Source: Pavona decussata
Lineage: Eukaryota
Direction of reading: 5' to 3'
Length of the DNA stretch: 64,000 nt
Assembly: GCA_977016875.1 (NCBI GenBank)
Contig: CDRNST010000251.1
Span: 1,302,001 to 1,366,000 of the forward strand
Position 1 is the first letter of the stretch. Each line of letters starts with the position of its first letter. The position numbers were made by a program, and so were the translations under genes. The notes under the pieces are model-generated. The model saw nothing but the letters and a program-made list of their open reading frames with translations, did not search any database and was not told where the DNA came from. Positions 23,734 through 59,928 of this stretch are shown here, one piece after another.

Positions 23734-23809
23734 TATGTTCTTAAATTTTGGTCAATCTTAGCCTCAACGAGTCGTTATAAAACAAGGTTATTATAAGAAA
23801 AGACTACGT

Positions 23810-25560
23810 GATCATTATCAGTAGCTGGGCACAGACCCTTATATAAAAAGGGCTAGTAATATAACAAATGACCACCGTATATAACTCAGTGCCAACAAAC
23901 AACCCTATATAAATACATAACTGAAAAAAGACCATATATAAGTAAACGGCTTTTATAAGACATGCGGCGATTATGAGACATATTACAAACGGCGATTATA
24001 AGACGCCTTATAAACGGCGCTTATAAGACGCCTTACAAACCGCGATTATAACACTCCTTATAAACCGCGATTTTAAGACGCCTTATAAACGGCGATTATG
24101 AGACATATTTCAAACGGCGATTATAAGAACGCCTTATAAACGGCGATTATAAGACGCCTTATAAACCGCGATGATAACACTCCCTATAAACCGCGATTTT
24201 AAGACGCCTTACAAACCGCGATTATAAGACGCCTTACAAACCGCGATTATAAGACGCCTTATGAACAGGGATTATAAGACTCCTTATAAACCGCGATTTT
24301 AAGACGCCTTACAAACCGCCATTATAAGACTCCTCATAAACCGCGATTTTAAGACGCCTCACAAACCGCGATTATAAGGCGCCTTATGGACAGGGATTAT
24401 AAGACTCCTTACAAACCGCGAATGTAAGACTCCTTATAAACCGCAATTTTAAGACGCCTTATAAACCGCGATGATAAGACTTCAAGACTCCTTGAACTCC
24501 TTATAAACGGCGCTTATAAGACTTATGAACAGGGATTATAAGACTCCTTACAAACCGCGATTATAAGACGCCTTACGAACAGGGATTATAAGACTCCTTA
24601 CAAATCGCGAATGTAAGACTCCTTATAAACCGCGATTTTAAGACGCCTTATAAACGGTGATTATAAGACGCCTTATGAACAGGGATTATAAGACTCCTTA
24701 TAAACCGCGATTATAAGGTGCCTTATGGACAGGGATTATAAGACTCCTTACAAACCGCGAATGTAAACGCCATTTTAAGACGCCTTATAAACGGCGATTA
24801 TAAGACGCCTTATGAACAGGCATTATAAGACTCCTTATAAACTGCGATTTTAAGACACCTTACAAACCGCGATTATAAGACTCCTTATAAACCGCGATTT
24901 TAAGACGCCTTATAAACAGCGATTATAAGACATCTTACAAACCGCGATTATAAGACATCTTACAAACCGCGATTATAAGACTCCTTATAAACCGCGATTT
25001 TAAGACGCCTTATAAACAGCGATTATAAGACATCTTACAAACCGCGATTATAAGACATCTTACAAACCGCGATTATAAGACTCCTTATAAACCGCGATTT
25101 TAAGACGCCTTACATACCGCGATTATAAGACTCCTTAAAAACGGCGATTATAAGACTCCTTATAAACCGCGATTAAAAGACTCCTTACAAACCGCGATTT
25201 GAAGACTCCTTATAAACAGCGATTATAAGACAACTTACAAACGGCGATTATAAGACGCTTTATAAACGGCGATTATAATACTCCTTACAAACCGCGATTA
25301 TAAGACTTCTTATAAACGGCGATAATAATACTCCTTACAAACGGCGATTTTAAGACTCTTTACAAACGGCGATTATAAGACTCCTTATAAACGGCGATTA
25401 TAAGACTTCTTATAAGCGGCGATTACAAGACGCCTTATAAGCGGCGATTACAAGACGCCTTATAAACGGCGATTATAAGACTGCTAATAAGACTCTTTAC
25501 AAACGGCGATTGTGACTCCTTATCAGCGGTGATTCGATTATAAGACTCCTAATAAACGGC
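23810..25560 (+). repeat. Left arm: ~125-bp terminal inverted repeat plus 25-bp tandem array (TTATAAGACGCCTTATAAACCGCGA)
   Basis: About 60-65 units; reverse complement of 58100-59928. Confidence 0.93.
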
Positions 25561-26827
25561 GATCATCCATAAACGGCGTCTTTACGTCTTTAACGCCGTT
25601 TCTAAGATTTCTTATCAAATTGATCGTAAGAACGCTAAACCTTATGAACGCTTTTGCTAATTCCATACGAAAACTGTTCTTTCGGAACACGTTTTCGTTA
25701 CGAAAATCGACTTTTAAATCGCCAGATTAAGGGTCCTTACGCTTTAAGATTTGTCGATTTACGAACCCGTGAAGTCGTCTGCCCCCATAGCACACAATTA
25801 CCATATCTTTCATGTAGGTTTTGTTAAGTTTTATTTCTTAATACTAACCCATTATTACATTAATAAATAGTAAATAAAACAAAGTAATCAATAGTGTTTC
25901 TTTTAAAAATGCCTAATTTAGATTCAAATGTCAACCCATCAAAAAGCATGAAATTTGATTTTCGGTTCTTTTCAGAAAAATAAGTGGACATTGTTATCTG
26001 TTTTAGGAAAGTTACAATTAAATATTGGAGATACCGTCACAAAAATCTTATCGGGTGAGATGATTTAAGCATCTTTGTGCTTCTAATAATCTGGGCGTTT
26101 TTCACACCCAAACCCTGGGTTACCGTAAACTTTAATTCTAAGTTAATAACTAGTCAATACGGATGATGCACAAGAGTCTGTCATATGGTATCGAGAATAG
26201 TAAAAGTTAGACTATTTTGTGGCATCTCCAATTGGGTATTTATTACTGGTACATAAACAGTGGATCTCGATCGAATCGCACAATCTTCAAAAAAGAACTG
26301 AAGTGAACATCTAAGGAAAGCCAAACAAAATACAATGGAAACAGGGCCTGGTTTTTCGAGTAACGATAAACCGAGCTTTACGATGCCTTTGGCAAGTGTT
26401 CTAGATGAAAAAAAAAGTTATTTACATAAATGAACAGCAAAAGGCGTAATGCGTTGTAATAAAAATACTGTAATTATGTTTCTTGGTTGTTGAATGTCAC
26501 CTATGAAGTAAAAAAAAAAGAGAGAGAGAACATACGGCATGAGTCTATTGTAGTTTTCGTGTTGGGTATTTCATCCTTATTTTACTTACATGAACAAATG
26601 TACAATCAAATTGTTTTTCAACTAATTTTGACTTTTGCACCGAATTTAAGCCCTCCTTGCCCACTAGATGGTTTTGCGAAATCAATGCTCGTTTAATGGC
26701 AGGATCCTTGTTGCTAAGGCCTTATTCACGGAGAAAAGAACAGTACTGCACATTTAAAAAAAAAAAACAGAAAAACCCATAGTGAGTGATGCACGTAGTG
26801 ATACTTACAGCTCCGCTGTTGTCTTGG

Positions 26828-26873
26828 TCATCATTGTCATCATTGTCATCATTGTCATCATTGTCATCATTGT
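26828..26873. repeat. 9-bp tandem repeat (GTCATCATT)n, reads (DND)n on the minus strand
   Basis: Five perfect units between minus-strand splice-like sites. Confidence 0.85.
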
Positions 26874-28429
26874 CCAGTCGGGGTCGTTTAGAGGTTTCTC
26901 CCTAAAAGGAATTAAAAAACAAAACCCAAAGAAACTCATTACGTATACAACACGACAGTACAAAAATGTGGAGTTCTAACATCTTAAAACAGTTCTCATG
27001 CTATCACTAAAGCACATCAACATAACAATTCCTTTTGCATTTTGGAAGAGAAAGTCACTGTAACGTGGCTTGATGGCTAGCTGGCTATCCTAACCACACT
27101 TTTCGACAGCTTAAAAGTTAAGACGAGTGGGAGAACTTGCTATTCTTACAGTTTTTAAGATATCCTGGGAATACTTTGTGAAATGGTTGGTCTGACAATG
27201 CAACGAATGTCAGAAGGCCAGTCACTTCTTAGATTATGCTTTGCGTTGATTTTATGTTTCTTTCAAATTACTGACCTGCTTTTGGATAGCAAGGAGTCTC
27301 TTCTGTCGCACCTGAAAAATATTCCCACAAATTATCAGCTTACATTCAAGCAACAAGTTCACCTCAATACCATTTGAGTGTACCGCATTGATGAAAAAAT
27401 AAGATCGTTTAAAGGTGAGTATTGCATGCTGTATACAACACATCCCCAAGTCTCATCTCCTTCTTCGATTTCTTTTCATTTCCTATACTCTTCTCTTAAA
27501 AAATAATTTCTCTATGTGTAAATAGAGTACATGTAAATAAATTTTACACAAAATCTCTGTAGCTTGTTATACTGGTCTCCTTTTAAAGTTATATGATGTC
27601 ACTTTTTATTGATTTAGACAAAAGATTATTTAGTACCTGCTCATATTCAGGGCTGTCCCTCTCAGTTTCATCCAAATCTTCCTGAAAAACACATTTTTTA
27701 TTTGCATATAAATAACTAGAATATCCCTCAGAATAATAGTTTATGTTTTGTTTCTGCACAGAGCAATACTCTGTGCCCCCACGTTTACTCCCAATCAAAG
27801 GGAAGGGGAGTGGACGACTAATAGAATTGGGGCTCCATCTACAAGTGTTTATTCATTAATCAGAAGAAAAAAATTCATTATAAATGTGGTGTTACGTACA
27901 AGACTTAGTAGTGACCAGTGACTGTCATTTACTTCGGACCATTTTAAATATATAAGTGGATGTTAAAATTAATTATCCCCTAAGGAATACAATTTTCTAG
28001 CGAAAGTGTGTCTAGCAATTTAATTAGTTAAGAAACAGGACCGAATCAAGATAGCACTATTATCTTCAAGGTTATTCATTGGCATCACTTGCCATATAAT
28101 AGTCACCGGATTCAAATACTTAAAGACTCCCTTTGCAATCGAGTTATTGAAGGCCATCGGAGTCAGGCTTCTCAAAACCCGCTAGCACGTGTACAGCTAC
28201 TTTCTCTTATTAAAAAGTGACTGATCAGGGGAATCTGTGATTGAATCTCGTGTTTGAAGGTGGCTCTTGCTTCTGAAACATTGTACATAAACGCTAGGCG
28301 GTTACTAGCCAACTTTTCGTTGGCTCATGTTGTGCTGCAATCTTACAATGTGGAAATCGTGTCATTTGGACCAACACGTCAGATGCATGTTCAGCAATGT
28401 GGGAAATAGCATTTTTGTGATAACAAAGC

Positions 28430-29690
28430 GTCGCGATCAAGTTCCTTAAAAACGCCATTGAGATCAGATTTTTTAAACATGCCATCGCTATCAAGTTCTT
28501 AAAAACACCATCGCGATCAAGTTTCTTAAAAACCCCATTGAGATCAGGTTTCTTAAAAACGCCATTGAGATCACATTTCTTAAACACGCCATCGCGATCA
28601 AGTTCTTAAAATCGCCATTGAGGTCAGATTTCTTAAACATGCCATCGCTATCAAGTTCTTTTAAAAAACGCCATCGCGATCAAGTTTCTTAAAAACCCCA
28701 TTGAGATCAAGTTTCTTAAAAACGCCATTGAGATCACATTTCTTAAACACGCCATCGCGATCAAGTTCTTAAAATCGCCATTGAGATCAAGTTTCTTAAA
28801 AACGCCATTGAGGTCAGATTTCTTAAACATGCCATCGCTATCAAGTTCTTAAAAACGCCATCGCTGTCAAGTTTCTTAAAAACGCCATTGAGATCAGGTT
28901 TCTTAAACATGCCATCGCTATCAAGTTCTTAAAAACACCATCGCGATCAAGTTTCTTAAAAACACCATGGCGATCAAGTTTCTTAAAAACACCATGGCGA
29001 TCAAGTTTCTTAAAAACACGATCGCGATCAAGTTTCTTAAAAACACCATCGCGATCAAGTTTCTTAAAAACACCATGGCGATCAAGTTTCTTAAAAACAC
29101 CATGGCGATCAAGTTTCTTAAAAACGCCATTGAGATCAGGTTCCTTAAACATGCCTTCTCAAACTCATTAATAATTCAAAAGCCAAAGACAAAGGAAATC
29201 ATACACCGTGACGTGTTTGGATATCTGATGAAAAACTTCTCGTTTTTGCATCCTTCATTTCTCCTTCAAAATCGGTTTGTTTGAGAAGTTATATCAAACC
29301 CTCGTCACAGTGTCATCACAATATCAAAAATCTCGAAGTTCGTCAAAAAAACTCCGCTAAGCGTCGTATTTTCAACTCTCTTCTCGGTGTTTGATATGTG
29401 ATGAAACACTGTGTCTCGTGTTTGATATATTACATCGCGATCAAGTTCTTAAAATCGCCATTGAGGTCAGATTTCTTCAACATGCCATCGCTATCAAGTT
29501 CTTAAAAACGCCATCGCGATCAAGTTTCTTAAAAACCTCATTGAGGTCAGATTTCTAAATATGCCATCGCTTTCAAGTTCTTAAAAACACCATCGCGATC
29601 AAGTTTCTTAAAAAACACCATGGCGATCAAGTTTCTTAAAAACGCCATTGAGATCAGATTTCTTAAACATGCCATCGCTGTCAAGTTTCT
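28430..29690. repeat. 26-27-bp minisatellite (AAAAACACCATCGCGATCAAGTTTCTT variants), interrupted at ~29155-29433 by an interspersed repeat
   Basis: Direct tandem units. The insert resembles 20940-21140 (atatcaaac...gtttgatat family). Confidence 0.9.
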
Positions 29691-30494
29691 TGTAAAAAAA
29701 GCAACGCGAAAAAACCTGGCGCGTTCAATCCGAGAAAAACTCCAATAATAACGAACGAACAACATTAATCATTACAAACTAGGGCCAACTTGCGACGTCG
29801 AATTAAATTGGTTATTGCATTCTTTCTCCTGAATCTCTAAGGTTGATGAGACAAGCGTACGACAGTCAATGTTCCCAGGAATGGTTTTGGTGGTGTTCAC
29901 GAACCATGTAAAACGCTTTCAGGATGAGATTATGGTTTCAGTCAATTACAATGTCGTGAATTAGCCTGTACCACGAACCATGCGAAGGGAAACGTTGCTA
30001 AACCAAAATGGCGCGAAATGGAACTGGAGGTTACGCGCTATACGGTTACACGGTTGCAACAATTTGCTGTTTTCGACATACCAAGTTTGAAAGGAATAAT
30101 TTGTTTTCTTCGAAATTATTGACATTTGTTCTCTAAATAATACGTATAACGCGCCAGTTCTTTTCTCTGTAACCACACAACAAGCATCAGATACTTAAAA
30201 CGCCATTGGACCATCCAATACGACTCATTTACGGTCATAATTAAGCAGTTTGCATCCAAATTCTTATCCCCTCCATACGAGTGTGGGCCATTAACCATCA
30301 CATTAAAAAAGCCCTCGAAATCCGTTGCTTGGAACTCGACAAAATTAAGCTTTCAAAATGTTTCAAGCTTTCAACACAGGACACCCGACAACTCAAAGAA
30401 ATAGCTAGAAATGTTACCTCTTTGTGCGTTAATCTTCTCAAAACATCAAGTTCTTAAACATGTCATTGGGTTTGTTAGTGGGGAACTTATACAG

Positions 30495-31452
30495 TGTAGA
30501 AGAACATTTTTTTTACCTCCTCCTCGTTGTTATCTTGTGCTCCAGCCTCATTGTCACCCTATAAGTAGACAACAAAATGAATCATTCACAAAGTTCGTTG
30601 AAATAAACATTTTCAGGCCAGAATTTTTGGATACAATTTTTTGTTGTAGTAAATAAGTCCGTGAGTTTTAATGTGAAACGGTTATTTTACGGGCAATGAC
30701 CTACATTCAATGTCGAGACAGACTATTTCTCTCTCAAGTCTTCCATCAAGTAACATAATTGAATTGTTTCGCTTGAGATTCTTTATTCTTGTTCTTTATT
30801 TTTGCTTTAATAGAGCTTCAAAACCGCGGCATGCATCATCAAGTTTTTAAATTTGGTTCACGTTTCTTCAAAGCGCTCGCTCTTTAAAGAGGAATAGGAG
30901 GCTAGAGCCGCTTACGGATTACAACATTGTCAGCCGGAAACTAAACAGAAGAACATTTCTTTTACCTGTTCCTGGTTGTCTTCCTGTGCAACAGTTCCAT
31001 GTTCACCCTACAGGTAGCAAACAATATGAAACATTCACAAAATTGGTAGAAAGAAACATTTTCGGGCGGAATTTTTTGTTGTAGTAAATAAGGTCGTCAC
31101 TTATAATGTAATGCTTTTGTTTGTTTGTTTGTTTGTTTATAGTGGAAATGCACTTAGCTACCCAAAGCTAGTTTACAGGCATTCCACTCAGAAATAACAG
31201 GACACAAAAAAAAAAATCAAATCGTACACAACATGTCAAAAAATCCCAACTAGCAGGAGGCAAACCAGCTGGCTATTTACAAGCGTGGCCGAGGCGGGAC
31301 TTGAACCCAGGACCTCCGGAATTCAAGTCCGGCGCCCTTGCCACTAGGCCAACTTCTTAGCAATGACCAAAATGCCAGTAGAGATAATTTCTCTCTCAAG
31401 TCTTCCATCAAGTAACATATAATTATAGTATTTTGCTTGAAATTCTTTATTT
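30495..31452 (+). repeat. Diverged local tandem duplication (~30495-30790 vs ~30948-31452), the second copy interrupted by a SINE
   Basis: Shared blocks agaagaacattt...tttacct, cattcacaaa, tgttgtagtaaataag and ctctctcaagtcttccatcaagtaacat. Confidence 0.8.
31120..31351 (-). mobile_element. tRNA-derived SINE
   Basis: Minus strand TGGCCTAGTGG (A box)...GGTTCAAGTCC (B box), then a body and an (AAAC)n tail. Confidence 0.75.
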
Positions 31453-38500: not shown

Positions 38501-40580
38501 GAATTGGGTCGCATTTTCAATAGAGTTTCTAGAAAGGGGTCGCACATTTTCGGATTTTTGGGGTGAAAAAATTCTATTAAGTAGGGATTCAAAATGGTCT
38601 TGGTTAAAAAGTTCAGAAAGTTGTTGTTTATTAAATGTAACAATCACCTTGCATTACATTCCGTTCTTCAAAGTAGATGCATAAATTGAAAGTGACTTAG
38701 TGGGGATCGCAAAAATTACATTTTTCCAAAAAGTGACTAAGATGGGGTCTATAACTGGCCACAAAATAGACTATAACTACCCCCCCCCCCCCCCCCCCCC
38801 GTGCTCATTGGGAAGATACAACTTATGAAATGGTCAATTGACCCGGGAGTAATTACAACGTAGGTGAATGAAGGCTTATGCCAGATCCCAAGATGAAAAG
38901 AATGCAAAAATTTCCCACTATTCCAGCACTATTGCCCTAAGTGAGAAAGGGGGGAGGGGGTGGGCATAGCCGGAATTGACTGATTCATAATGCAAAGCCT
39001 TACTGAGTCATAGATTTATCTTGCAAATTTTTCAAATAAAAGCGGTTGTTGTTGTTGCTAATAACCATCACCGCATCGATGAAATTTGGAAATGTTCCAA
39101 TGACATTATTTTACGCTTCAATAAAATCAAAAACATGCTGAGATTATGTTGCAATTTCCAATTTTCATGTTGAAGCATTCCGAAGACCCCCAAAAGGACA
39201 GCACCCTCAGTGTTTTTTTTTTTTGTAAATAAGTTACATGCAATAACTTATTAACGCTATTAGTTTAAATTTATAATAACTTAAGCTTACTTTGGCCTGA
39301 TGGTCCAGCTTGTTGATGATCTTCTTCGATCTCCACTTGATCGTCGGTGACAACATCTAGGCGTACGGTAGCATGAAAGAAAGTCAGAAACGCTATCAAT
39401 GATTCATTGTAGTTCACGTTTTAAACTGATAAAACGATATAAACATTAGCCTACCCTCAATAATTTGCCTATTTTCGTCTTGTCGATTGTCGATTTCTTC
39501 CTCTTCTTGTACTGGCTCTTCCGTTTGTTCTGAAGAGAGAATAAGAAGTTGATGTTACAATCATCACCCTTTTAAACAAATACATGTAAATTAAGATCTT
39601 AATTCAATGTTGGAAAGATGAATGCAACAAGCACAACAAATTAAAATGTTTTCTGTTTCCCCAAATAAGCATTTCCCAATGCAATGATAACGCAGTTCCG
39701 ATAAGCAGTTCCGATGTCACCAGGTTGCAAAGCCAAACGTAACCTCGTGATCTTCTGGGGTTTTCCCGCCAAAACTTACTCTTGTATTAACTTTAAATTG
39801 GAAACGAGTGAAGGTATCAAAGTAAAAAATGAGAAAATAATATTTGTATCAAACTTTCCTGTCTACTTACATCGAGATATGAAATTAAAATTACTTCATC
39901 TCAGTACAATTTCATTTTGAATCAGCCTATAATGCTCTCTGTTGAGTGAAAAGTCACCTATTGGCGTGAAATAAAAAGATGAACAATACCTTCCGAGCGT
40001 TCAGCTTGCTGGTTTTGTGCGGCGTTTTGTGCAGTGTCGTCGGCCCCATCTGTGAATTGAAAGAATACAAATAGAAAATCGGCTTTCCTCATAGTACTGA
40101 GAAAAAATTACTGTGTACTGTAAAAGAAGTTATTACCTAGTAAGTTGAGCCTCATGTAAATCTTCCTTGGGTTTCTACTGAAATGGAGTTTCAAAGTTGG
40201 CCCGCAGACCTCTCCACCGGAACATATTCGGTCGAGGAGTGTGGTGCTCCCGCACGATTTGTAAAAATACAATCTGAAAATTAGATAGATGTTATATTGG
40301 TTTATATGGAAGGCGAAGGAATCTTTAAAGTGATTTAAATTGTATATATTTACCTTGAAAAATCTTCCGCTTCGAGTTGTGAACGGAAAGCGTGCACAAG
40401 CACCTCCTTCATGTGCTCGTTGGTGGCGTTGTTAGGGAAAACGATCTCTTTTACTCGCCCTGACCTTTCAAGAACATCGAAAGTTCTTGCTTGAGGGACC
40501 CGAAGAGGATCTATCCACCTCAACAGAACGGCTGTTCTTTTCAAGTTCCTGGCGCGTGTAGCTTGCGTCCTTTCAGCCAT
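32570..40580 (-). pseudogene. Multi-exon gene of unknown function, divergent from the Merlin transposase. 5' exons are intact (40580-40354, 40273-40137, 40049-39990, ~39529-39456, ~39356-39293); downstream exons look partly degenerate
   Basis: Phase-compatible GT-AG exons give MAERTQATRARNLKRTAVLLRW...RVKEIVF...LYFYKSCG...GPTLK...KIYMR plus an acidic linker. Many further small minus-strand exons run to ~32.6 kb, some with stops or frameshifts. Confidence 0.55.
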
Positions 40581-41016: not shown

Positions 41017-42829
41017 ATGAATCTCTTGGAGGTAGCCGCTCTTTCCAATGGTCCTACCTTAGAACTGATTCGATGGCTACAGGGGCAAAATTTACTAGCC
41101 AATCCACTGAGATGTGTACCCTGCAATCAAGCGATGGAATTATCGGAAAGAAACCGAGAACATGTCGATGGTTATATATGGTGAGTTTAGTAGGATCTTG
41201 GTTAGAGTGGGGTTTTCGTTCCTCTTATTCATCTGCTCATTGTTTATAATGAAACTAGTACAGACGCTAATGTATGCCCAATGGCAAAAAATAATTATTA
41301 TAGTTGTCGTCCTAAGGGGTAGAAATTTGAAAAAGTATTTGTTGCGAGCGCAATTCCCGCGGCGAAGGCGCAGCAAACGGGCTCCTAGAGCTGAAGTTGG
41401 ACTAGAAGAGGGATTTTTAGACATAACTTGCGCAACTTCTGGTATTTACATAGTTGTAGAGGAATCTTAGTTTTCGAGGTGTCTTGCATCTGCAAAGTTG
41501 TCTTAGCGGCTTTCAAGACATCCCATTCACATGTGTGATGCATCCGGTCAAAGTAGCTAAATGTAGCGAGACCTCGTTTGACCAAGTAAAAGCACGCAAT
41601 GTATTCAGTCTACAGCTAATAACTTTGCTGTTAAATCGTTTTTCATATTTAATTTTATTTTTTTTAAGGAGGTGCTCCAGATGCCACTGCAAAAAATCTC
41701 TCCGCAATGGAAGCTTATTTGCAGAATTTCCAAGGCTCCCATTGGGAAAACTCTTGCTTTTACTATTTCTGTGGAGTGTCCGCGAGTTAAGAAAAACTGC
41801 AGCCGAGATGCTTGGTTTAACTAATAATACAGTTGGCAACGTTTATGGAGTATTCAGGCATTATTGCAGAAGAGATCTACAAGACCGTCCAATTATTCCA
41901 TTTGGCGGGAACGTCTACATAGTAAAATGTGACGAGAGCCAATTCAAACATCAGTCAAAAGTGAGTACCAAAGCACTGACTATTTTGTCCAACTGTATGT
42001 TGCGGTAGCGACAACCCCGCTATCTCTAACACGTTTAAAGATTTTGTCGACGTTACCAAGGAAAACGAGTTTTAGTTGGAGTATACGGGAAAGCCGGACT
42101 TTTAAAAGCCTTCTAATACAGAAGTTTGCAGTATGTTTGCGCAGGATATATCCATGCGAATCAAGGTAGATCTTAGCAAGTGATTTTAAAATACAAAAAC
42201 TTAGGAAATTGCGGGTATCATATTAAGCACTGAACAATTCAAAAAGCGAGGAAACCAGACCCAAGGGAACGGCGAAAATGTCGAGCCTTTGAATTTTCCG
42301 ATGGACGAAATTTGTTTTATCTGACTAGGTTGCAACCAGGAATTAAATTTAATACGTAGTTTATGTCTTCCTTGTTCAGAATCAAAGAGGACGACGACCA
42401 AGGGACGACGTTTGGGTGTTTGGAATTATTTCAACCGAATACCGCCCTTGTCGTGGTTATTTCCAAGTGGTTCAGCAAAGAGACCGAGCTACTTTGGCCC
42501 CAATCCTACAGCGCGTTCTCCTTCCAGGCTCAGAGGTACACTCAGATGACTGGGCTGCTTATCGTGGCTTGGAGAATCATGTTGCTAATGTTCGTGTACA
42601 TAGGACTGTTATCCATCGCGATAATTTTGTTGATCCTGTCACCGGCATCCACACCCAAGAAATAGAGTCCGCATGGGCAAGACTTAAATATTTCATTAAA
42701 AGGGAGAAAGGGATTCGACGAGAGGATATCCAAGGTTTTCTCGACGAACAAATGTGGAGAGACTGGAGGGGCCAAGATAACAACTTCAATAATTTTATTT
42801 CAATTCTGCCTAATTATTATCCATTATAG
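41017..42829 (+). CDS. Merlin / IS1016 (IS1595-ISXO2-like) DDE transposase, 3 exons (41017-41180, 41669-41960, 42380-42829), ~301 aa
   Basis: N-terminal CxxC...CxxC Zn ribbon; IVKCDES, RGR...WVFG, VHSDDWAAY, VIH..NFVDP.TG.HTQEIESAW. GT-AG introns join in frame (906 nt). Confidence 0.93.
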
Positions 42830-42842
42830 AAAACAGATACAG

Positions 42843-43075: not shown

Positions 43076-44759
43076 GCAGTAATGGAGGTACTTTTTTTTT
43101 TTATTAAATAATCAAGTTTTAATAGACAAAGAAAATTTTTTTTTTTCATTTTTAATTTTTGAGAGAAACATTTTCATGTAATTATTGATATAATATGTTT
43201 GCAATGCCTTATTTTCTATTTTAATATAATACTTTTGCGATGTTTTAGTAACGCACCTATCAATGTCTAGCGCCAATGAGGGGAGTGCAAGCATACCCAG
43301 GGGCTATTGACGATTGACATTTTCAAATATTTTGGTCAATAAATTTCAAATTCCACAGCCTCTGCCATTTCAAACCTTAATTCTTGTTCAAAATGTCCCC
43401 TTCCTTGGACAAAGTTCACAGGTCGAATGCCCCACTTATGCCCGCACTCTCCCTGTTGGGGCAAGATATTGATAGGTGCAAAAAACGTAGCTGTATATTT
43501 CATGAATAAAATTGTGCTGCAAGATAAAAATTAACAACAACAATGAACATGGCTGAAAACTGCAACTGTGTCCAATCAGTAATGAAGCTATTCTATGATT
43601 GTCACATACAAGACAACTGTGACATTAGAAACTTATTTTTTTTTTTTAATATTTATATTCAGTATAAAAAGAAACAGATCCAAACCTTTCCTGTTGTCAA
43701 CTATAAATAAACAGGAAAAAAAATCCTGCAAAGAAATGAGGAGGGGAAAAAATATCCTGCAGAGCATTTAGAAGGGAAAAAATATGCTGCCCACCAGGCT
43801 GTTAGAAAAAAAAATTCTTGCTGACCAGAAATCACCCACCCTCCCCCCCCCCCCCCCCTCAAAGTTAAATGGTCGGCCCTTAAAATGAACATTCAGCCAT
43901 GAGTCGGTTCCATAGAAGTTTTTACTGGCACTGCAATCGGAAATTTCTTTTTCTAGAACCTTGAGGCTGACATTACACGAAGTTATAAGATAACTGGCGA
44001 TAATTGTTTGAGCCATAACGTGCCGCTGTGATTTAGCTATTGGTTCATCGTATATTGACCATATTTGGGGATTTTTGATATTGAAAAGCCAATAATTGAT
44101 CCGGAACGTGATAACGTGTAATACTAATAACCATTCTGATTCACTATAGCGTGCTAAAAAGAAAACAAAAATAAAAAGGGACTTCACTAATGACTGCACT
44201 AATGAAGGTCGTGCATGAGTTTCACGATATCCCACAACGGCTGCGACAACCACTGACCAAAAAATCGTAGCCTCTGGTAACGAGGATGCCTAATGATCCA
44301 GAGACTTTTTGGCGTGGTCATACAGAGAAAGCAGAATTACGCAATTACTCTTTGTATCCAAAAAAGTAACCGGGGAGAACCATGCTTTTTCAGAGATACC
44401 GTACAATTTCGAAAGTAACGGCCCTCGTTACTTTCGTATTAGTGCTGGCCAAAGGGGCAGCTACTATCGGGTAGCCGCTACTTTCGGATGGTTAATACAC
44501 GTTTGTAACTTGTTAAAGGCGTCAACCCACTTATGCATGTTGTGAACTCTCCTCGTGAACATAGCAAACTGTAACACCAAAGAAAAAAAAAGGCCCAAAT
44601 ATTCGGCAAGTAGGAGTTCCAACTCGTCCGAAATCAGTCACTAAAGGTAGTTCAATTATAAAGCGGTTGAGAAGGTATGCCCATGTCAAATTTACATGGC
44701 AGCATCAACGTCAATATCCTGTTCAAAGTGAATGTTCATGACAGAAAAAAAAGTTTCTC

Positions 44760-48600: not shown

Positions 48601-50556
48601 CGACGGTTTATTCCAGGAAATTGTTACTGTTCTTATTTTTAGTCAATTTTGGTAGATTTTCTGAGGTTCTTTTACCGAATTCATGGTAGTTGGTGTTCAT
48701 TTTAAAGAGGAATATATGTAAATAATAATATCGGTTATTTTAGGGTCAGTTTCGAAAGTAAATACTATGGTGTTAGGGTAATTGTGAAGATAAATATCCA
48801 TTTTTGTAATTCTGCTATTAGCCACGTACTGGATGTATAATTCGAGCTTTAAATTTATTTTGACCACGTCCCCCTTTAATTTATGGAAGCTTTTAACCAA
48901 TCACTTTCGATGAAGAAGGCTAACACCTTCATTCAACTTTTACTGTTTTTCAGATTATCTTTGTGAAACCTTATTGTATAAGTCCGAACTTTGTAATTTT
49001 TATATTGGTCTCCCTGTTTTGTATTGACTGGACAACTCAAGTTTCATGATGATATTTCTCTAGAAAGATGTCTTTGACTTGGTTAATAGATCAAAGGCAC
49101 GGATGCAAATAAGTTTCTTGCAGCCAATCACAGAAGGCTTGCGTAAGATTTAGTTTGCGTTAAGCGGATGGTTGTCGAGCCATCTAGTTTTAGTAGAGAA
49201 GTGATTGTTGAGCAGAGTAAGCTGAACTTATGTCAGAGTAATAAAGAATAGCAACTGAAGAAGCTATTGGATCTTTGTTGAAGTGAACCCAGCTAATTCC
49301 CCGTAATAGGTTCTCTCAACAGTATGACTAAGAGAGGATGAGCTATGAGCCATGTTTCGACACGTACACTTTATTCACGAGTTAGCCACACTGAGGCATC
49401 CTTGGATTTTTTAAGTAGGCTAAATAAACGTTGCATTTGTTATATTTATATTAGAATAGCAATTGTTAACAAAAGTTCTATCATCCTGTCAATATTTACC
49501 ATTCTCCTGGTCATTCCCAAGTAATATTCTCCGAAATTCGTCATTCCACGTTCCTCTCCTTCAAGCGAAGACAAACCTGGGAAGGTTATTAAGCAAGGGA
49601 AACCTTATCTTTGTCTTTGCGACCACTCTCGTAGGCGACGACCAGCTGTAGTTATGACCACCATTGCAAAACCCAGTTCGAATTGTCACTGTTAAGCTGT
49701 CTCTATAGCTAATCAAAAGAAAGCCGAAGCGACCGCGACCACTTTTTGAAATTACCAACCGCGTCTTTTCCTTTGTTTTTTAGTCCTCGTAAGCCGACCA
49801 GTTAAAGATTTTGATACGTATTACGGCAACTCGTTAATAAAAGTATTTTTACTGGCTTAAGAACATAACTTATACTTTCCTAAAATTTCAACATGCTTCC
49901 TTTATGACGCCAAAAACCAAAGAAATCGGTTAATGTTCGCGTTACTTGTACTACATTACAGGTAGAAATTACATTGTAAGCTCTTCTTGCTAACACTCTC
50001 GTAAGCGACCATCATTGTGAGACCCCGCTTGGATTTTCACTTAAACTTAGTAAATCAAAAGCTCATAGGCAATTTACTCTTTTTGTATTATGTAATGTAG
50101 ATATATACTTTAAGGGGTGTATCTTATTTTTTCTGTACTGCTTTTGTATATTATAAGTTCAAAAAAAAAAAAATCACGTTTGTAGTGAAATGTAAGTAAT
50201 TACGCGTAAGTTATATTGTTATCTATATAATGTGAGTATTGTATTATGAGTAAAAGTGTAAGTACAGTAGGTTATTGTAAGTACTGTAACGTGTGTGGTT
50301 GAAAAAAAAAAAGTCAAAAGCTTTCGTAAGCGACCACTCAAAGATTCTGATACGTCTTAAATAAAAGTAAACTCTTCGTGATCACATTTACAGAAATATA
50401 GTACTGCCTAATGATGTTCGTCGGCAGATAAAGATCTTGAAATAAAATTCAAGATGATTTACCGCTCTGGTTAGTGACCAGCTTCTATTGTTTCAGCCTT
50501 TGGTCGCTAACGATCGCGAGTTTGCATGTAAGCGAACAGCTCTCCTCGTGACGTTA

Positions 50557-51466
50557 CTGGAAACCGATAATCGGAAATTCAATCGATCAATCGATATCAA
50601 TCGATAAAATTAGTTAATTGGTATCGATTGGTATCGGCCAATCGATGACCAATCGATAACCACGCAAAAACCGTTCATCGATTGCTATCAATTGGCTTAG
50701 CAACTTTGAACAGACGTCACGCACGCTACCTGTTCGATCATCCGCCATTTTTAGGAAACACCAAAACTAAAATGGCTCATCGCTTACTACTATGATGAAA
50801 AAGAGGAACGTCTTTTTTATCTTTTGCTGCATATTTTATTTCTTTTAGACGCGATTGGCGCCTTTATAGATTTTTTAGCTTGTATGTATGTGATCCTTGT
50901 TCTAAGTACGATTAGCCTCGAAATTATAAGGCTTGGTATTGCTGCTTTTTTAAGTTTCATTATTTTGCAGCAACTCATGCCGCTGCTGTTGGTAATTTCA
51001 TTGTTTGCAAAAGTACAACTTCTGTTACCAGAATTTTTCGGTGAAGGCACGATGTAACCACTTTCCGTTTTTTGACGTGTATAGATTGGCCCATGGAACA
51101 AACTTTTGAATTTGTAAAAAAAATAAAATTAAATAATGACCGGATTCCTGTGGACGGGGCATTAACGTTAAAGAAAGAGAAGAGAGCATTGTTTTCCTGT
51201 TAACATTAAATTGAAATGTGTTTATTATCACTGCGTACAAAGTTGTGCTTTTTATGCGTCGATTCCGGTCCCGTCAATCTGCATCCAATCGGTACCAATT
51301 TACCTATCGATTGGTATTGATAATCGATACCAATCGATAACCACACGAATCTTCGCCATCAATTGGTCATCTATTATCAGTATCAACCGATTAATTGATA
51401 TCAATTGGTATCAATTGATCAATCGATTGTCATCGATTATCGATTCCATCGATTGGATACCCCGGG
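50557..51466. mobile_element. Non-autonomous element with ATCGAT-rich, self-complementary ends
   Basis: Dense ATCGAT/ATTGAT motifs at 50560-50700 and 51285-51460 around a unique core; ends in ccccggg. Confidence 0.6.
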
Positions 51467-51697
51467 TCTTACTAATCTCGTTTTTTCGGTCCGCATCTAA
51501 AAGGCTTCAGGAATTGATAAACATGATAACCAGAGCTGGTACCGTAGCGACAGAAGCAGTTAAAATATCTTCCTTAAGTTTAATTGCCATTATAATTGTT
51601 TTTTCCATACTTGCCTCATTAAAAAATTCTCGACACTTGTGAAATCACCCATGCGCGCGTTAAGTTAAAATTAATTAGTATGATTGTAAAGTCAAAA

Positions 51698-51700
<3 letters not shown>

Positions 51701-51731
<31 letters not shown>
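51701..51731. repeat. (AT)n microsatellite
   Basis: Perfect dinucleotide run. Confidence 0.95.
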
Positions 51732-51735
<4 letters not shown>

Positions 51736-52865
51736 GCCATACCCCCAACACCCCCTTCCGCCCGCATCAAAAACAACGAGTAAGTACAATCAGTTTGAGC
51801 GCTAAGCAAAAGAAAACACATAAGACAAAGTTATTTTTTTATCTGATCGAGTGAGACAACTGCGCAAATTATCTTACCAATCACAGAGCGAAGTAAAAAA
51901 AAAAGAAGAAAAACCAAAAAAAAAAAAAACGCGAATTAAATTCTTTTGAGGCTCAATATACCCATTCGGGTCCATTCGGCTAACGCAATGTTGTACCCAA
52001 TTCAAATCCTTTGGGCATAAAATGTGTTGTTCTAAGCATTTCCATATCGTTGAAATGTGAATGCTACATTATAATGCAAATGTAATAAACAAATAATCTT
52101 AACCCCGGGGGATTTGAATTGAGTAAAACATTGCGTTAGCCGTATGAGTCTATTGAAAACGGTCTATGTGCTGCAATTTAGTGGTATTTTTGAGGTCTCG
52201 AAAGATACGCAATTTTTTTTTTTCTATTTAATTACACAATTTGGTTTGTCTAATTTGATTCTGAAATACTAACACATTTATTGTGACCCAAAACTTGCAG
52301 TAAAACGAAGTTCACGTTTTTGTAGTACCCGTGTATATCAAATCACTACTTAATTGCTAAGTAATAACTTAGTTTTTAATATTGAGGACGATGCCTACTA
52401 ATACAAAAGGTTTTTTGTGCGGCTTATGAATATGCGGGAAAAGCAGATCCTAATTTTCTTTTTCGATGTTAAAAGCAGTTACTAAGTTCTCTTTTCTCCG
52501 CATAAATACCGCGTAAAAAAATCACTGTAAGGCACCATCCATAAGGAAACCTGAGATGCGTAAAAGTAGACACCGTAATAATAACAAGTTTTCGAGCAGT
52601 TTTCCTTTTACCAGGAGCCAATCAAAAATGGCACATCACCCATGTTTTCACTGCCGAACTACGTTTTGATATCAACAAACTGTAATCGCATTACAATGTT
52701 GAAAGCGGCGGAATTTTGAAGAGTCGTACTTGGAAAAGAACATCCGGTTTGATCATCTCTGCGTTCATCATTAACTTGCGAAAAGCACAGTTCAACTAAT
52801 CACAGCTAATCAAATCCTCTTTCAGTTTCGCATTACGTTGTTGATGTAACAGTCCCAGTGTAATC

Positions 52866-55364
52866 ATGTCCCGAAGAGTTTTCGACAGCGTTGATTTGAG
52901 CGATTTCCCTCCTGATTTTGCTTGCGAGGTTTGGTAAGTCAAGAAAACTGAAGTTCCCTTTTCAATTCAAAAACCGATTGAGAGTATTTTCTTGTGTTCG
53001 TTGCAGTACGTATCCAATGGTTAACGCACAAACATCCAATCCATGTGGCCACTCAATTTGTGGTCACTGCTCCGAGGAACTTAAAAAAAAGGGGAACAAA
53101 ACCTGCCACAAGTGCCGACAGCAAAGGATTGGTTTTTGCCGCAATATTTTCGCGGAACAGTTGTTAGAAAAGATCAAAGTTAAATGCAATGGATGCAGCG
53201 AACAAGTTGCCGTAAATGACGTGGCCGTCCACGTGCGACAGTGTACAGAGGTTGAAATCGAGTGTGATCTTTGCAAGCATACAATGAAACGAAGTGAGGA
53301 AGAAAGGCACCAGGAAACATGCCCCAAAGGAGAAGTGAAGTGCAAGTGCGGGCTTAAGTTGAAGCGCGAAGAAGAAGAGCTGCACAAAGAAACCATGTGC
53401 AATATGACCAAAGTCCCTTGCCCCCTGGGCTGTGAGCTAATGGTAGAGAGGTATGGCGGTAACAGAAATCTCTCTGTATTTTGCCTTAATCTTTTGTTTC
53501 TGCGTTACAGTTGCGCTGAACTAAAACAGCGTTTCTAAAATGATATAGCCTTGGCATTTAGAAGATCGATAAGTTATACTGTATCACAGTACCTTAGCGG
53601 GGATCACACAAAGCCGCAAACCGCGGGCCAGTAAAGTAACAAGTTAATAGTTTCACCGGGCCATTGTTGTTCCTGCATTACAACCAGATCCTTCTCTGCA
53701 GACAAAATCGCCTTTCCGGCAAGTGCGAATGTCGGACATTTGATTAAAATTGTACGTTATGGCTAAATTAACGTTTTATTGGCGGCCTAAAACCACGCTT
53801 AGGAAGTTGTTTCCTCATAGTGGTGACCGCAGTTCTAGAGAGAGTTGATTATAGTCCTACTCGTTATCTTTGCTAAATATGGCTATGCGAAATAACAATC
53901 TTAAGCGTCGATTAAATCTATTATAGAATGTGGATCATTACTGGAAAACTTTTCAAGAAACTTATCAATTTATTTGAACGCGACTTTTCTGCTAAATCAG
54001 TTGGTAATTTTGACTTCCTGATTCTTACAAAAAAAATGTGTACACGAATTAGTAGCCTTTTTAAGGATGTCTTCAATTTCGTATTTTCTCATAATAACAA
54101 GCTAAAACAAACAAACTAACATTGAACAATATTTTATGATCCCCTCTCTCAAGATATCTAGTGCCGTCACATTGTTTGACATGCAAGAAAACGATTGAGG
54201 AGTGCAAGGTGGCTGGCTGCGGCCACAATGTAAGACGACAAGATTTGCAAAAGCACACCGAAGACCAGCAGCAAAGACATCTGCGACTTTTACAAGCCGA
54301 GAAATCAAGCATCCTGTGGAACGCGGAGAGGGTAGGCGAGAGAAACTGAAAACATATATAGTATATTTACATATAATGAAATAATGAATTGAAGACTTCA
54401 TCAGCTATTAACGTGCTCAATAGATAAACTAGGGTAATATGTAGATTTTCATAGTTGGATTATTTGGTCGAAGACATTTATTGCTACTCAGAGTTTCATG
54501 GGGATAAAACATAGTGGAAAATAACTATGTACAAGACTTACATAGCCTAATTCAAAAACGAAGTTTAAATTCTACAGGAAAATTTTGAATTCATGGCATG
54601 ATGAGGTCTGTAAATTATTTTATTGCTCGTGGAATGGTTGCCCCGAAAATTGGACGAGAACGAAAACATGCGTTAAAAAAAAACCGTTTACAAAATGGAA
54701 AAAAGAGACGCCAACAAATAACAGAGACACGGATAATAAAACAAATGCACTAAAATTCCAGTACGAAATCCCGGGACGGTTGTTTTGTGTATTTTGTTGT
54801 TTGTGTTTTCCTAAACATTTTAGGTTGGTTTGGGCTAACTATCGGATTTGCTTGATAGTCAAGAGTTTAAAATCAATAGGCCGTGTTACCGGGAGGAAGT
54901 CTGTGGGAGTGAGTGACTGTATTGATAATTCTGAAATGTAGCGAATATGTAATGGTAAAATAAGAGGTGGAAATTTTGTAGCAAGTTAATGAAAATCTAT
55001 TTCACACACAAACACACCATACTTTGCGCAGACGAAGCTACAAAACAAATAATGAACAATTTGCGTTTATTGTAGGGGTTATTAGGTGTTAAAGCAATCC
55101 GAACCAGCCAGAAATGCGTTTTCCAGTGGAAAATTCCTACGGGGATGAACGGCAAAGTAAAGTCTCCCATCTTTACAAAATTTGAGAGGCGGTGGCAACT
55201 TTTATGTGACGGGAGAGAAATCAGTTTATGTTACGTTCAAGGCCTGGAACCTATAGCGGTTGTCCTGACGTAAGTTTTTACTGCCATAATAATGATAATA
55301 ATTACTCCATCCCCTGACACCATCCTCGAGCCAAAAATGTCCACATAATGTACTGATACTGAAA

Positions 55365-55411
<47 letters not shown>

Positions 55412-56275
55412 AGATATAACTAATATAGAGAAATTGTTAACACTTCATTTTGTCCCTGGACCAGCTTGTTAGTTTGCTTTAATTGGACAACCGTCTTACC
55501 TCGCAGATTTTTCTCCACTGTGCCATGGAATTATCTTGTTGGCCGTTAAGTTATTAAAAAGGAAATATTAGAAGAAATATGGCACACCATAAGTTGCAAG
55601 AAAAAACACCTCAAAATAAACCTTTTATGGCTATATTCTATATAACTCCCAAAAAATAGATGGCATTCAATTAAATACCAAGAGCACTTGCTAAAATCTA
55701 CCTTCTCGGCATAGTTTTAATTTTAAACAGCGCAAAAATATCCCTGTATTAGTAGGCACCACCCATAGGACACCCGAGTGCTAGGGATGCACAGAACGTA
55801 TGGGCAGTGATAAGCACAAGCGCTATCGTATCATCGACTTTGTTGTTTTAAAAAAAGAAATTGGCGTAACCATGCATTTTTCAGAGATATAAAGCTTCGT
55901 AGTGATCAGTACTATACATTCCTTAGTATTCTATCACTCTAAGAATTACTGTTTCTTATTTTTCACATAAAAAGGATTCCCATAGCCCTGGCTAAAATCT
56001 GCTTTTTTTCTGCATAGTAATAAACTGCGCAAAAATACCTCTGTATTTGTAGGCACCATCCTTAATACTCAGAAACAAAAGAGCTTAATAATATCTCTTT
56101 CAACAGTTTCATTGTGAAGACCAGTGGCGGCCGGAAGCTTTTATTCAGAGACGGCATGGCGTTCAGGGTGATAATGAAAGAAGGGGAAAAAGTGGATATC
56201 CAGAATGTAGATGACCCGGAAGTAATCACCGTGAAAATTGAGGTGACAGAGCCCGCATACAGGAAAAATCTGTAA
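52866..56275 (+). CDS. TRAF-like E3 ligase (RING + TRAF zinc fingers + short coiled coil + reduced MATH-like domain), 5 exons (52866-52933, 53007-53450, 54154-54331, 55076-55269, 56107-56275), ~350 aa
   Basis: C3HC4 RING CEVC...CGHSICGHC...CHKC; repeated C..C...H...C fingers; C-terminal CVFQWKI...KSPIF...RRWQL. GT-AG introns give a 1053-nt open frame. Confidence 0.88.
55362..55412. repeat. (AAAT)n microsatellite in a TRAF intron
   Basis: Perfect tetranucleotide run. Confidence 0.95.
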
Positions 56276-56929
56276 TTCACAAGTCTATATTTTTTCTCCT
56301 TTTGTTTCAAATTTTGGATTTTTTTACGATCATTTTTTCTTTTCTTTTCTTTTGAGGAGGGAAACAGATTTCTGTTTTAATATTGTTTTGCACATAATGA
56401 TTTTGGCTACTCCATTTTATAAGCCTCCTCGTTCAAATGATAAATGTATACTTGTGAACAGGGCCACTGTCATTTCAATTTTTCTCAACACGCTACGAAG
56501 TCCTCTATTAAAATGGCTTCCAGTAAAATTTCCTCTAATATCGTGTAGTAAATCTACTAATCAAACTTGCCAGTCTACAGAATAGAGCGGTTTTCAATTG
56601 TGTCGACAGTACTTTCGCGTTTGCCTTGGTTTAGCTTTAGTACGCTCTGTGATTACTTACCAAAATTCGGGCCATTTTCTCAACCAAGCAAAACCGAGTA
56701 TGAATATCTGTCGTGGGTCGTGGGTCGTGGGTCGTGGGTGGGGGTAAAAGTCGTGGGTAAAAACCAAAACCAATCATGCCTCGTTCGTACGAGTTTTCGC
56801 GCGCGTGGCATGTATTTGCCTTGTGATTGGTCAACGCAATCGTTTTACTGATTTTACGAAACTAAATTGAAAACCCTTCTCGTCTGACTAGATTAAGAGA
56901 TAAAAAGTAGCATCAATTATAAATAATAG

Positions 56930-57250
56930 ACTGATTATTCATTGATAATCGATGGGTAATCGATAACTAATTGACAAGTTTTCTCTCGGAGTAAACGTTT
57001 CCCCTCTAAGGCCGTTGTTTTGACCTATATACATGTAAATAAAAAATTACTTGTATTTCTTTATTTTCCATTAAGTATGGTTTGTGTAGCCACGAGAATT
57101 ATATCGATCGCTAAAAAATACAATCAACAGCTAATCGCTGGCTGCCAATTTCGTGGCCTATCGATTTCCTGTTACTCATTGATCACCAATCGATTACACA
57201 ATTAATACTCAATGATTTCATTGACGTTGAATTGACAGTTAGTCTATACC
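56930..57250. repeat. ATCGAT-rich dispersed repeat remnant
   Basis: gataatcgatgggtaatc is the reverse complement of gattacccatcgatta at ~43030. Confidence 0.55.
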
Positions 57251-58099
57251 GGAAGTATTAATGTCAGAGAAGTAGTAAGCTGAAGAGATTTCAATTATTA
57301 GTTGACTTTGCGTACATCAGAAGTAGTTGTTATCGTACACGCTTTCTGGTGAGCTCAAGTGTTGAAGTACATGCCAAGGTCCCCTAACTCGTCTAAACAC
57401 GTCACTGGCACCCTGGCATAAGATAATGGATGTGAATGCGTTCCCTGTAGCTCGTAATATGCACGTTTAATAGTCCTTCCATGTTTCAAAATCTTAACAA
57501 TGGTATACTTGACTGCTTATCTGCATTAATAATCTGTATATAGCTGTACATATGTACATGTTTACTGTTGTGTTCTAAAGTCATAACAATGACCTATCAG
57601 ACTGGATATCTACATGAATCTTTTGTATATAGATGTACGTACTATTTGCAACATATTTTGCACCAGATTACTCATTTCATTACTCATCATTCATTACTTT
57701 CAATGGTTCGCATCCTTTCATCGGTATGATATCCAAATTTCAAAAGGACCCAATAATCAATGGATTAGGCATACTAATCTGCACAAAAGTCTGCGAATAA
57801 ATTGCACGTTTTGTTTATACGCTTTGGTCTCTAATGTTTCTGTCTTTATAACACAGTTATCGCTTCTTGATAGTCAGTTTGGATAGAAATCAAATTAAAA
57901 TAACATTAGCGTTGGCCGTAAACGCGAAGCTACATCTCTCTATTGTAGCTTCAAACGGATGCTTCAATTAGTAAAGTCTCTGCGTCATACGGTGGCAGTT
58001 TTATTAAGTCAGCATTTTTGAAGAGTCTTGAAGACTGTGTCGGCGTTTTAAGGACTAGTATAAACGAAGTTGTAAGGGAATGTTTTTATAATAATCTTT

Positions 58100-59928
58100 T
58101 TTTTTATAAACGGCGTTTATAAGGCGTCTTATAATCGCCGTTTATAAGGAGTCTTATAATCGCCGTTTATAAGGAGTCTTATAATCGCCCTTTTTATAAG
58201 GCGTCTTAAAATCGCGGTTTATAAGGCGTCTTAAAATCGCAGTTTATAAGGCGTCTTAAAATCGCCGTTTATAAGGAGTCTTATAATCGCCGTTTGTAAG
58301 ATGTCTTATAATCGCGGTTTATAAGGCGTCTTATCATCGCGGTTTATAAGGCGTCTTAAAATCGCGATTTATAAGGCGTCTTAAAATCGCCGTTTATAAG
58401 GCGTCTTAAAATCGCAGTTTATAAGGCGTCTTAAAATCGCGGTTTGTAAGGAGTCTTATAATCGCGGTTTATAAGGCGTCTTAAAATCGCCGTTCATAAG
58501 GCGTCTTATAAGCGCCGTTTTTAAGGCGTATTATAATCGCGGTTTATAAGGCGTCTTAAAATTGCGGTTTATAAGGCTTCTTAAAATCGCGGTTTATAAG
58601 GCGTCTTAAAATCGCAGTTTTTTAAGGCGTCTTAAAATCGCCGTTTATAAGGCGTCTTAAAATTGCGGTTTATAAGGCTTCTTAAAATCGCGGTTTATAA
58701 GGCGTCTTAAAATCGCAGTTTATAAGGCGTCTTAAAATCGCCGTTTATAAGGCGTCTTAAAATCGCAGTTTATAAGGCGTCTTAAAATCGCGGTTTGTAA
58801 GGAGTCTTATAATCGCGGTTTATAAGGCGTCTTAAAATCGCCGTTCATAAGGCGTCTTATAAGCGCCGTTTTTAAGGCGTATTATAATCGCGGTTTATAA
58901 GGCGTCTTAAAATCGCGGTTTATAAGGCGTCTTAAAATCGCAGTTTTTTAAGGCGTCTTAAAATCGCCGTTTATAAGGCGTCTTAAAATTGCGGTTTATA
59001 AGGCTTCTTAAAATCGCGGTTTATAAGGCGTCTTAAAATCGCAGTTTATAAGGCGTCTTAAAATCGCCGTTTATAAGGAGCCTTATAATCGCCGTTTGTA
59101 AGATGTCTTATAATCGCGGTTTATAAGGCGTCTTAAAATCACCGTTCATAAGGCGTCTTATAAGTGCCGTTTATAACGCGTATTATAATCGCCGTTTATA
59201 TAATCGCGGTTTTTAAGGAGTCTTAAAATCGCGGTTTGTAAGGAGTCTTATAATCCCTGTTCATAAGGCGTCTTATAATCGCCGTTTATAAGGCGTCTTA
59301 AAATCGCGGTTTATAAGGCGTCTTAAAATCGCGGGTTATAAGGAGTCTTACAATCGCGGTTTGTAAGGAGTCTTAGAATCCCTGTTCATAAGGCGTCTTA
59401 TAAGCGCCGTTTATAAGGAGTCCAAGGAGTCTTGGAGTCTTATAATCCCTGTTCATAAGCAGTCTTATAAGCGCGGTTTGTAAGAAGTTTTTTAATCGCC
59501 GTTTATAAGGAGTCTTATATTCGCGGTTTGTAAGGAGTCTTATAATCGCCGTTTATATGGAGTCTTATAATCGCGGTTTGTAAGGAGTCTTACAATCCCT
59601 GTTCATAAGGCGTCTTATAACCGCCATTTGTAAAATGTCTTATAATCTCCGTTTATAAGGCGTCTTGTAATCGCCGTTTGTAATATGTCTTATAATCGCC
59701 GTTACATAAGGCGTCTTATAATCGCTGCTTATGAGAAGTCTTATAATCAAGGACTATTACAATTCACGTTTATAAGGAATGTTGGAAGCCGTTAACGTTC
59801 ATAAGGTCTTTTTTCAGTTATGTATGTATATAGAGTCGTTTGTTGGCACTGAGTTATATACGGTGGTCATTTGTTATATCACTAGCCCTTTTTATATAAG
59901 GGTCTGTGCCCAGCTACTGATAATGATC
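58100..59928 (-). repeat. Right arm: 25-bp tandem array plus ~125-bp terminal inverted repeat
   Basis: Reverse complement of 23810-25560; ends ...GGGTCTGTGCCCAGCTACTGATAATGATC at 59928. Confidence 0.93.

Follow-up and report, generated by a model that had tools for sequence, protein, structure and literature searches.

A probable giant Merlin DNA transposon with foldback-type ends in the coral Pavona decussata

Merlin is among the least studied superfamilies of DNA transposons, and its elements are generally a few kilobases (kb) long. The superfamily comprises relatives of the bacterial insertion sequences IS1016/IS1595 (Feschotte 2004, as summarised in PMC8101967). The hallmarks given in PMC8101967 are terminal inverted repeats (TIRs) starting with 5'-GG and target-site duplications (TSDs) of 8-9 bp, and the same paper gives TIR lengths of 24-462 bp, an element size of 2.57 kb, and internal tandem repeats in some families. 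Here we describe a candidate member of very different dimensions in the coral Pavona decussata. The stretch analysed, called the window below, comprises the 64,000 nucleotides of contig C251:1302001-1366000, and the genome searched contains 602 Mb in 1180 contigs. We read window positions 23809-59929 as one copy of a giant (31-36 kb) Merlin/IS1595 DNA transposon with foldback-type ends, and give this reading a probability of roughly 0.85.

Foldback transposons are the second group to be compared. Those described, such as Drosophila FB, Galileo and Tetris, belong to the MuDR/Foldback or P superfamilies and produce 9- or 7-bp TSDs, and to our knowledge none occurs at 30 kb or more as a single autonomous unit. 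The element in the window resembles FB, Galileo (P superfamily, PMC4168063) and Tetris (PMC4079207) in its long inverted arms with short tandem repeats, its small unique terminus, its arms-only derivatives and its nested or rearranged clusters, but differs from them in transposase superfamily and TSD length. With Merlin it shares a DDE_Tnp_IS1595 transposase with the DDE triad, 5'-GG TIRs, 8-bp TSDs and internal tandem repeats. It departs from the published elements, as described in PMC8101967, in having arms of ~1.75 kb that consist mostly of ~60 copies of a 25-mer and in a length of 31-36 kb; unlike described Merlin elements, it also has a second, divergent open reading frame (ORF), and some copies hold an intron-containing gene of host type that may be complete. 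By all sequence-level criteria that could be tested the element belongs to Merlin. It appears to be a new, giant foldback-type form of an already known superfamily, ~10 times the usual Merlin size. In the literature searched, which lay mostly outside subscription journals and Repbase entries, no Merlin described as giant or foldback-type was found, and Merlin was not found in a review of giant eukaryotic transposons (PMC6431247).

An earlier note on this DNA had described two reverse-complementary, inward-facing arms 36,119 bp apart, with tips identical over 48 bp and differing at ~4 positions in ~125, each followed by ~1.6 kb of a 25-bp array. This description was borne out by an inverted-repeat search, which places the inverted, inward-facing termini at 23810 and 59928, and by global alignment, which gives 48 identical bases after the terminal nucleotide and 4-5 differences in the first ~125. 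Each arm of ~1.75 kb begins with a unique terminus of ~135 bp and continues with ~1.6 kb of the repeat, every unit of which contains TTATAAG plus its complement CTTATAA. The arms are made up as follows.

23809..23945, plus strand: left terminal unique TIR, ~135 bp; first base T against G in the family; four TATATAA motifs
23967..25490, plus strand: left subterminal array, ~58 units of 25 bp
58104..59748, minus strand: right subterminal array, ~63 units of 25 bp
59795..59929, minus strand: right terminal unique TIR; intact GG tip, the plus strand reading ...GATCC

With long inverted arms that consist largely of short tandem repeats, and with an arms-only derivative on contig C36, the family has the structure of a foldback element. 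The arm structure is not due to chance, because the same 131-bp terminus was found at at least 40 places in the genome. Comparison of these places also revises the claim that the termini read GATC rather than GG: of ~25 ends read, all except two have G immediately before GATCATTATC, the exceptions being the window left arm (T) and one diverged short copy, and the true end is therefore GGATCATTATC, i.e. GG. With the boundary set at this GG terminus, the 8-bp flanks of paired ends were read as follows.

C282:300089..331478, 31.4 kb: flanks GGTTTTTG on both sides, perfect TSD
C36:3378133..3380478, 2.3 kb: flanks TCGTCTTC on both sides, perfect TSD
C18 pair, 6.1 kb: flanks CAAAAGTT and ATCAAGTT, 5/8 match
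Window pair, 36.1 kb: flanks do not match

The family thus has both end features of Merlin, namely 5'-GG TIRs and, at C282 and C36, the perfect 8-bp TSDs that the earlier note had proposed as a check. At some loci the unique terminal piece itself is tandemly duplicated, with four copies at 405-bp spacing on C195 (3021000-3030999; 1194-2618 within), two on C44 (at 1001 and 1448) and two in L065, a sequence from another public assembly (reverse strand 3833-3988), and on C421 sequence of the 25-bp array borders the arm tip. These configurations suggest nested insertion into, or rearrangement within, other arms.

A second copy, C282:300089-331478, is colinear with window 23810-51541 at ~98% identity over 27.7 kb, Merlin gene included, and the homology ends exactly at the arm tips. 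Over the 21.8 kb of unique interior the two copies diverge by 2.04%. Two nested repeats, at 38421-38776 and 48229-49327, are common to both copies and were therefore already aboard when the element last moved. The left part of the interior contains three features.

25491..28430, plus strand: arm-proximal unique segment, retained by giant copies as well as by the deletion derivatives of 6.1 and 8 kb
28431..29691, plus strand: internal 27-bp tandem array, ~36 units in two blocks; conserved in C282, C421 and C414
29692..40110, no strand assigned: family-specific interior without a Pfam-recognisable open frame; ~2% divergence from C282

Large parts of the interior also occur, with different flanks, on four other contigs, C414, C421, C83 and C195. 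On C414 the arm and the segment corresponding to 24002-30873 were read directly, and the interior and Merlin region are 93-97% identical to the window; C379 has the same flank as C414 and is for that reason probably its other haplotype or a duplicate. C421 has the arm and the interior up to window 36636, joined there to an inverted piece, 57192..52376. C83 is 91-95% identical, with a deletion that joins window 39403 to 55258, and C195 extends over at least 24 kb at 91-92% identity. Shorter derivatives include the arms-only copy on C36 (2.3 kb), a 6.1-kb copy on C18 with the same ends, and the 8.06-kb L065, in which window 27668 is followed by 41727 and the identity to the window over 41727-44726 is 99%; arm-proximal interior is retained in the deletion derivatives. 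As judged from these copies, the whole element has been copied to several places in this coral genome, with the TRAF-like gene described below aboard in some of them, and has moved as a unit of at least 31 kb at least several times. The expectation that TIR pairs elsewhere would enclose the same interior held for the Merlin gene and the divergent ORF, both present in C282, and for the TRAF-like gene in some copies only, C282 having lost it.

A site without the element was found on the same contig, 125 kb further downstream: C251:1487132-1487341 matches both of the short unique flanks of the window copy, and the surrounding paralogue, C251:1485632-1488841, aligns with window 22207-23808 (92%) and 60361-61385 (95%). 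In this paralogue the two flanks stand 11 bp apart and none of the 36 kb is present, which excludes two separate insertions around host DNA, a possibility that had been raised for the arms. Taken with the whole-unit copy at C282, it upholds the proposal that the arms are the ends of one giant element. The empty site that had been sought is a paralogue on the same contig, not an allele. The three proposed checks, on the enclosed interior, the TSDs and an empty site, all gave favourable results. The order of bases is ...AGACTACG, T, element, C, TTTTCGTG, TCTAATCAA... in the window and ...AGACTACG, C, CTAATCAA... in the paralogue, and the difference next to the right arm is therefore the following.

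59930..59937, plus strand: eight bases, TTTTCGTG, that the paralogous empty site lacks; TSD length, but not a copy of the left flank

The count of eight assumes the GG-terminus model, and a further 9-bp indel lies in the window a few bases beyond. The extra bases possibly reflect imprecise repair after abortive end cleavage, or small indels in an indel-prone flank.

The transposase itself is identified by a match to DDE_Tnp_IS1595 (PF12762) at 42353-42826 (E 1e-15; score 58.5 bits, threshold 27 bits), which covers profile positions 26-151 of 153. The gene, with two exons and ~290 codons in all, was resolved into the following parts.

41538..41960, plus strand: transposase exon, 141 codons from the first Met; ends ...VKCDESQFKHQSK; donor GTGAGT
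41961..42379, plus strand: transposase intron, 419 nt, GT..AG
42380..42829, plus strand: last transposase exon, 149 codons and stop, containing the domain as well as the second D (in HSDDW) and the E (in QEIESAW)

The first catalytic D lies in CDES at the end of the first of these exons, within ...VKCDESQFKHQSK. All three residues, D, D and E, assigned by motif reading of the translations and not by structure, are readable and are joined in frame by an observed splice: among public-run contigs placed on window 40001-46000, one from run X10, whose kind was guessed to be RNA, joins 41960 to 42380 in frame, with canonical donor and acceptor, and skips the 419 nt, and the DNA run X4 is contiguous, i.e. 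unspliced, across the intron. Between the window and C282 the 873 coding nucleotides differ at 2 positions, both synonymous, and divergence across 40-43 kb, which contains the transposase and the divergent ORF, is 0.5-1.0% against the overall 2.04%, these two genes being four-fold more conserved than the remaining interior. The transposase is under constraint and probably expressed. It had been described as the only intact transposase, without TIRs of its own nearby, and both statements agree with our searches: no rival transposase was found by Pfam among the ~55 open frames of at least 75 amino acids (aa) inside the element, and the inverted-repeat search of 38.5-45.5 kb found no TIRs belonging to the Merlin gene. 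A Mutator-like (MULE-type) or THAP/P-type transposase with a 9- or 7-bp TSD does not fit the element, in which the IS1595-type domain is the only transposase domain found and the TSD is 8 bp.

Several observations count against a giant Merlin element. The window copy, the one under study, has no 8-bp match between its left flank AGACTACG and its right flank TTTTCGTG, a mismatch already reported in the earlier note, and its left tip is T instead of G. The C18 flanks agree at 5/8 bases only. The last transposase exon is unbroken in the window and C282 only, C414 having one stop codon there. The evidence for splicing is one assembled contig, from a run that was guessed to be RNA. For C414, C421, C83 and C195 the structures derive mostly from match coordinates. 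A one-base shift of the boundary in the window would align ACTACGTG with TTTTCGTG at 5/8 bases; this candidate TSD was dropped and is not counted as evidence, because the shift was picked after the fact.

Of the rival explanations, the one that survives best holds that the unit is real but has been moved in trans by another, unrecognised enzyme, with the Merlin gene as a passenger. The screen for transposases compared open frames of at least 75 aa with Pfam alone, most of the interior is unexplained and the divergent ORF has no known function, all of which leaves some room for such an enzyme. However, GG termini and 8-bp TSDs are hallmarks of Merlin, the Merlin gene lacks ends of its own and is the one strongly conserved segment between copies, and other Merlin families in this genome reach at most 75% amino-acid identity. 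We consider this explanation unlikely.

Less probable still, and in our judgement very unlikely, is a composite or macro-transposon in which two independent short foldback elements enclose host DNA with ordinary Merlin and TRAF genes. Such an arrangement has precedents in Ising's TE of Drosophila and composite giants (PMC6431247), which resemble the element described here in that a large gene-bearing segment is mobilised between inverted foldback-type ends; in those cases, however, two complete elements flank unrelated host DNA, whereas here both arms belong to one element, as its two ends, and enclose an interior specific to the family. Arms-only elements do exist and are mobile, as the perfect TSD at C36 indicates, the window copy lacks a TSD, and arm fragments occur in tandem or nested at C195, C44 and L065. 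Each window arm is nevertheless a single end with one terminus rather than a complete two-ended element, the empty paralogue lacks the whole 36 kb and hence leaves no host DNA between the arms, the same interior follows the same arm directly from the array in C282, C421 and C414, and the deletion derivatives keep the arm-proximal interior. The least probable alternative attributes the copies to segmental duplication or ectopic recombination instead of transposition, with the arms merely marking duplication boundaries. It could appeal to the segmental duplication in which the region sits, with its paralogue 125 kb away, and to the flank shared by C414 and C379, but fails on the window-C282 homology that stops to the base at the arm tips, on the perfect 8-bp direct duplications of otherwise unrelated flanks at C282 and C36, and on the older duplicate of the same locus without the element.

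For the giant Merlin element that we prefer, the following mechanism can be proposed. The transposase would bind the terminus and the TATATAA/TTATAA motifs of termini and arrays, which are putative subterminal binding sites, and would pair both arms, with the arrays assisting synapsis of ends 36 kb apart. It would then cut at the GG termini, excise the whole unit and paste it elsewhere by an 8-bp staggered cut that duplicates 8 bp of target. Internal deletion has given rise to the short derivatives of 2.3, 6.1 and 8 kb, which use the same ends. The window copy may itself be immobile, because its left tip has T for G and no intact TSD is present. In its size of tens of kb and its room for passenger genes the element is comparable to Polinton/Maverick, Teratorn, Starship and Helitron/Helentron (PMC6431247). 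Unlike these other giant eukaryotic transposons, it would move by plain DDE cut-and-paste; no polymerase, integrase, tyrosine recombinase, Rep/helicase or viral gene was recognised by Pfam among its ~55 open frames.

The TRAF-like gene lies beside the right arm, where Pfam recognises RING and zf-TRAF in an open frame at 52900-53535.

51542..58103, plus strand: 6.56-kb segment, absent from C282, rearranged in C421, partly present in C83; paralogue on C13
53017..56275, plus strand: TRAF-like gene; exon 2 probable, later exons candidate
53017-53451, plus strand: exon 1, with RING (E 0.005) and zf-TRAF (E 2.5e-8)
54140-54346, plus strand: probable exon 2 frame, with a weak zf-TRAF match (E 6e-4)
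~55076-55270 and ~56066-56272, plus strand: putative later exons

The view that the element carries an intact TRAF-like gene is retained in so far as a RING/zf-TRAF gene is present, and has to be narrowed in that the gene occurs in some copies only and its candidate last exons, searched separately, gave no match to the MATH domain. A search for homologues of exon 1 returned short unnamed predictions only and did not improve the exon model. Homology to C282 extends to 51541, where the C282 sequence passes straight into the right array. A paralogue of window 51467-57553 with 80-90% identity, C13:842108-848490, crosses this breakpoint, for which reason we interpret the difference as a deletion in C282 and not as an insertion in the window. 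C421 is 97-99% identical over 52376-55414, on the same side of the 49-50 kb region, and the segment is partly present in the older C83 copy. We suggest that acquisition took place at the DNA level: a 6.6-kb genomic piece that held the TRAF-like gene with its introns entered the element beside the right arm. Some copies carry it, and C282 has lost it through a deletion. Between the window and C421, exon 1 differs at 3 bases, all synonymous, and the exon-2 frame does not differ at all; C421 has a 2-nt indel in a later candidate frame. C13 was considered as an intact parent of the segment and rejected on account of a stop codon in the exon 1 frame, which makes it a decayed paralogue or relic. The window may hold the sole intact TRAF-like copy. 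A tentative proposal, with the odds against it, is that the element is still active and takes a TRAF-like immune-signalling gene, intact and functional, to new loci.

The gene reported to stand head-to-head with the Merlin gene corresponds to a minus-strand open frame spanning 40353-40700.

40353..40580, minus strand: divergent ORF from Met, 76 aa in this exon; head-to-head with the Merlin gene; unchanged in C282, 99% identity in C414

It has no Pfam match, and a protein-atlas search returned unnamed clusters only. Weaker homologues at C47:2120290 and C144:642491 are likewise head-to-head with Merlin homologues (C47:2115737-2116063 and C144:637952-638275; 67-69% identity), at a distance of ~4.2 kb. 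Three tandem copies of the ~70-aa domain of the divergent ORF, spaced 384 bp apart, are also present at each of two other loci, C45:36039-37021 and C222:494747-495733, which are perhaps host genes built of repeats of this domain. The remainder of the interior contains one orphan frame and a number of nested repeats.

43771..44289, minus strand: 173-aa orphan open frame without a Pfam match, frameshifted in C282
38421-38776: nested 357-bp high-copy repeat inside the family-specific interior, also in C282
42849..43500, no strand assigned: two nested repeats with further copies elsewhere in the genome
48229..49327, no strand assigned: nested ~1.1-kb repeat, many genomic copies at 82-91%, already in C282
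50558..51467, no strand assigned: nested ~0.9-kb repeat, few other copies, 85-86%

Further ORFs had been counted as cargo, and these are not conserved. The 173-aa frame has a relative in another assembly; it was rejected as a conserved gene and is probably not a gene, because it is frameshifted in C282. Besides Merlin and TRAF no Pfam family was found among the ~55 open frames, and the window-C282 comparison revealed no unusually conserved kilobase of interior outside 40-43 kb; most of the ~27-kb interior therefore looks like unconstrained non-coding filler with nested repeats. A repeat of ~183 bp at 51972-52154 has thousands of candidate genomic copies at 91-95% identity, and matches itself on the opposite strand at 70-75%, which identifies it as a palindromic miniature inverted-repeat transposable element (MITE).

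The neighbourhood of the element has features of its own. The segmental duplication relates window 22207-62849 to C251:1485632-1488841 at 92-95% identity, and probably also takes in the cluster of ankyrin-array genes nearby. Outside the element are two arrays of 198-bp units, at 1-2457 and 15183-17897, each unit encoding two ankyrin repeats and present in 12-14 copies. Just left of the insertion site, and in the paralogue too, is a MITE-like element of ~600 bp (23133-23735) with TIRs TACAGTC(A/G)AACCTGTATATAACGGCC and internal GGCCGCTTAATACAGG motifs. To the right, 60026-60811 forms an almost perfect, G+C-rich palindrome of ~790 bp, a foldback MITE of which the paralogue retains one arm only.

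The length of 31-36 kb, the perfect TSDs and the two intact, probably transcribed transposase copies would together indicate that a simple DDE enzyme can move units 10 times the usual size, and that a foldback architecture has arisen in yet another superfamily. Copies carrying the TRAF-like gene offer a testable route for the duplication and dispersal of immune-signalling genes in corals. If the element proves to be active with a functional TRAF cargo, it would offer cnidarians a direct means of expanding and reshuffling their innate-immunity gene families, and Merlin transposases would have no practical cargo limit. The natural transposase and its arms are, in addition, a candidate large-cargo gene-transfer tool for cnidarians.

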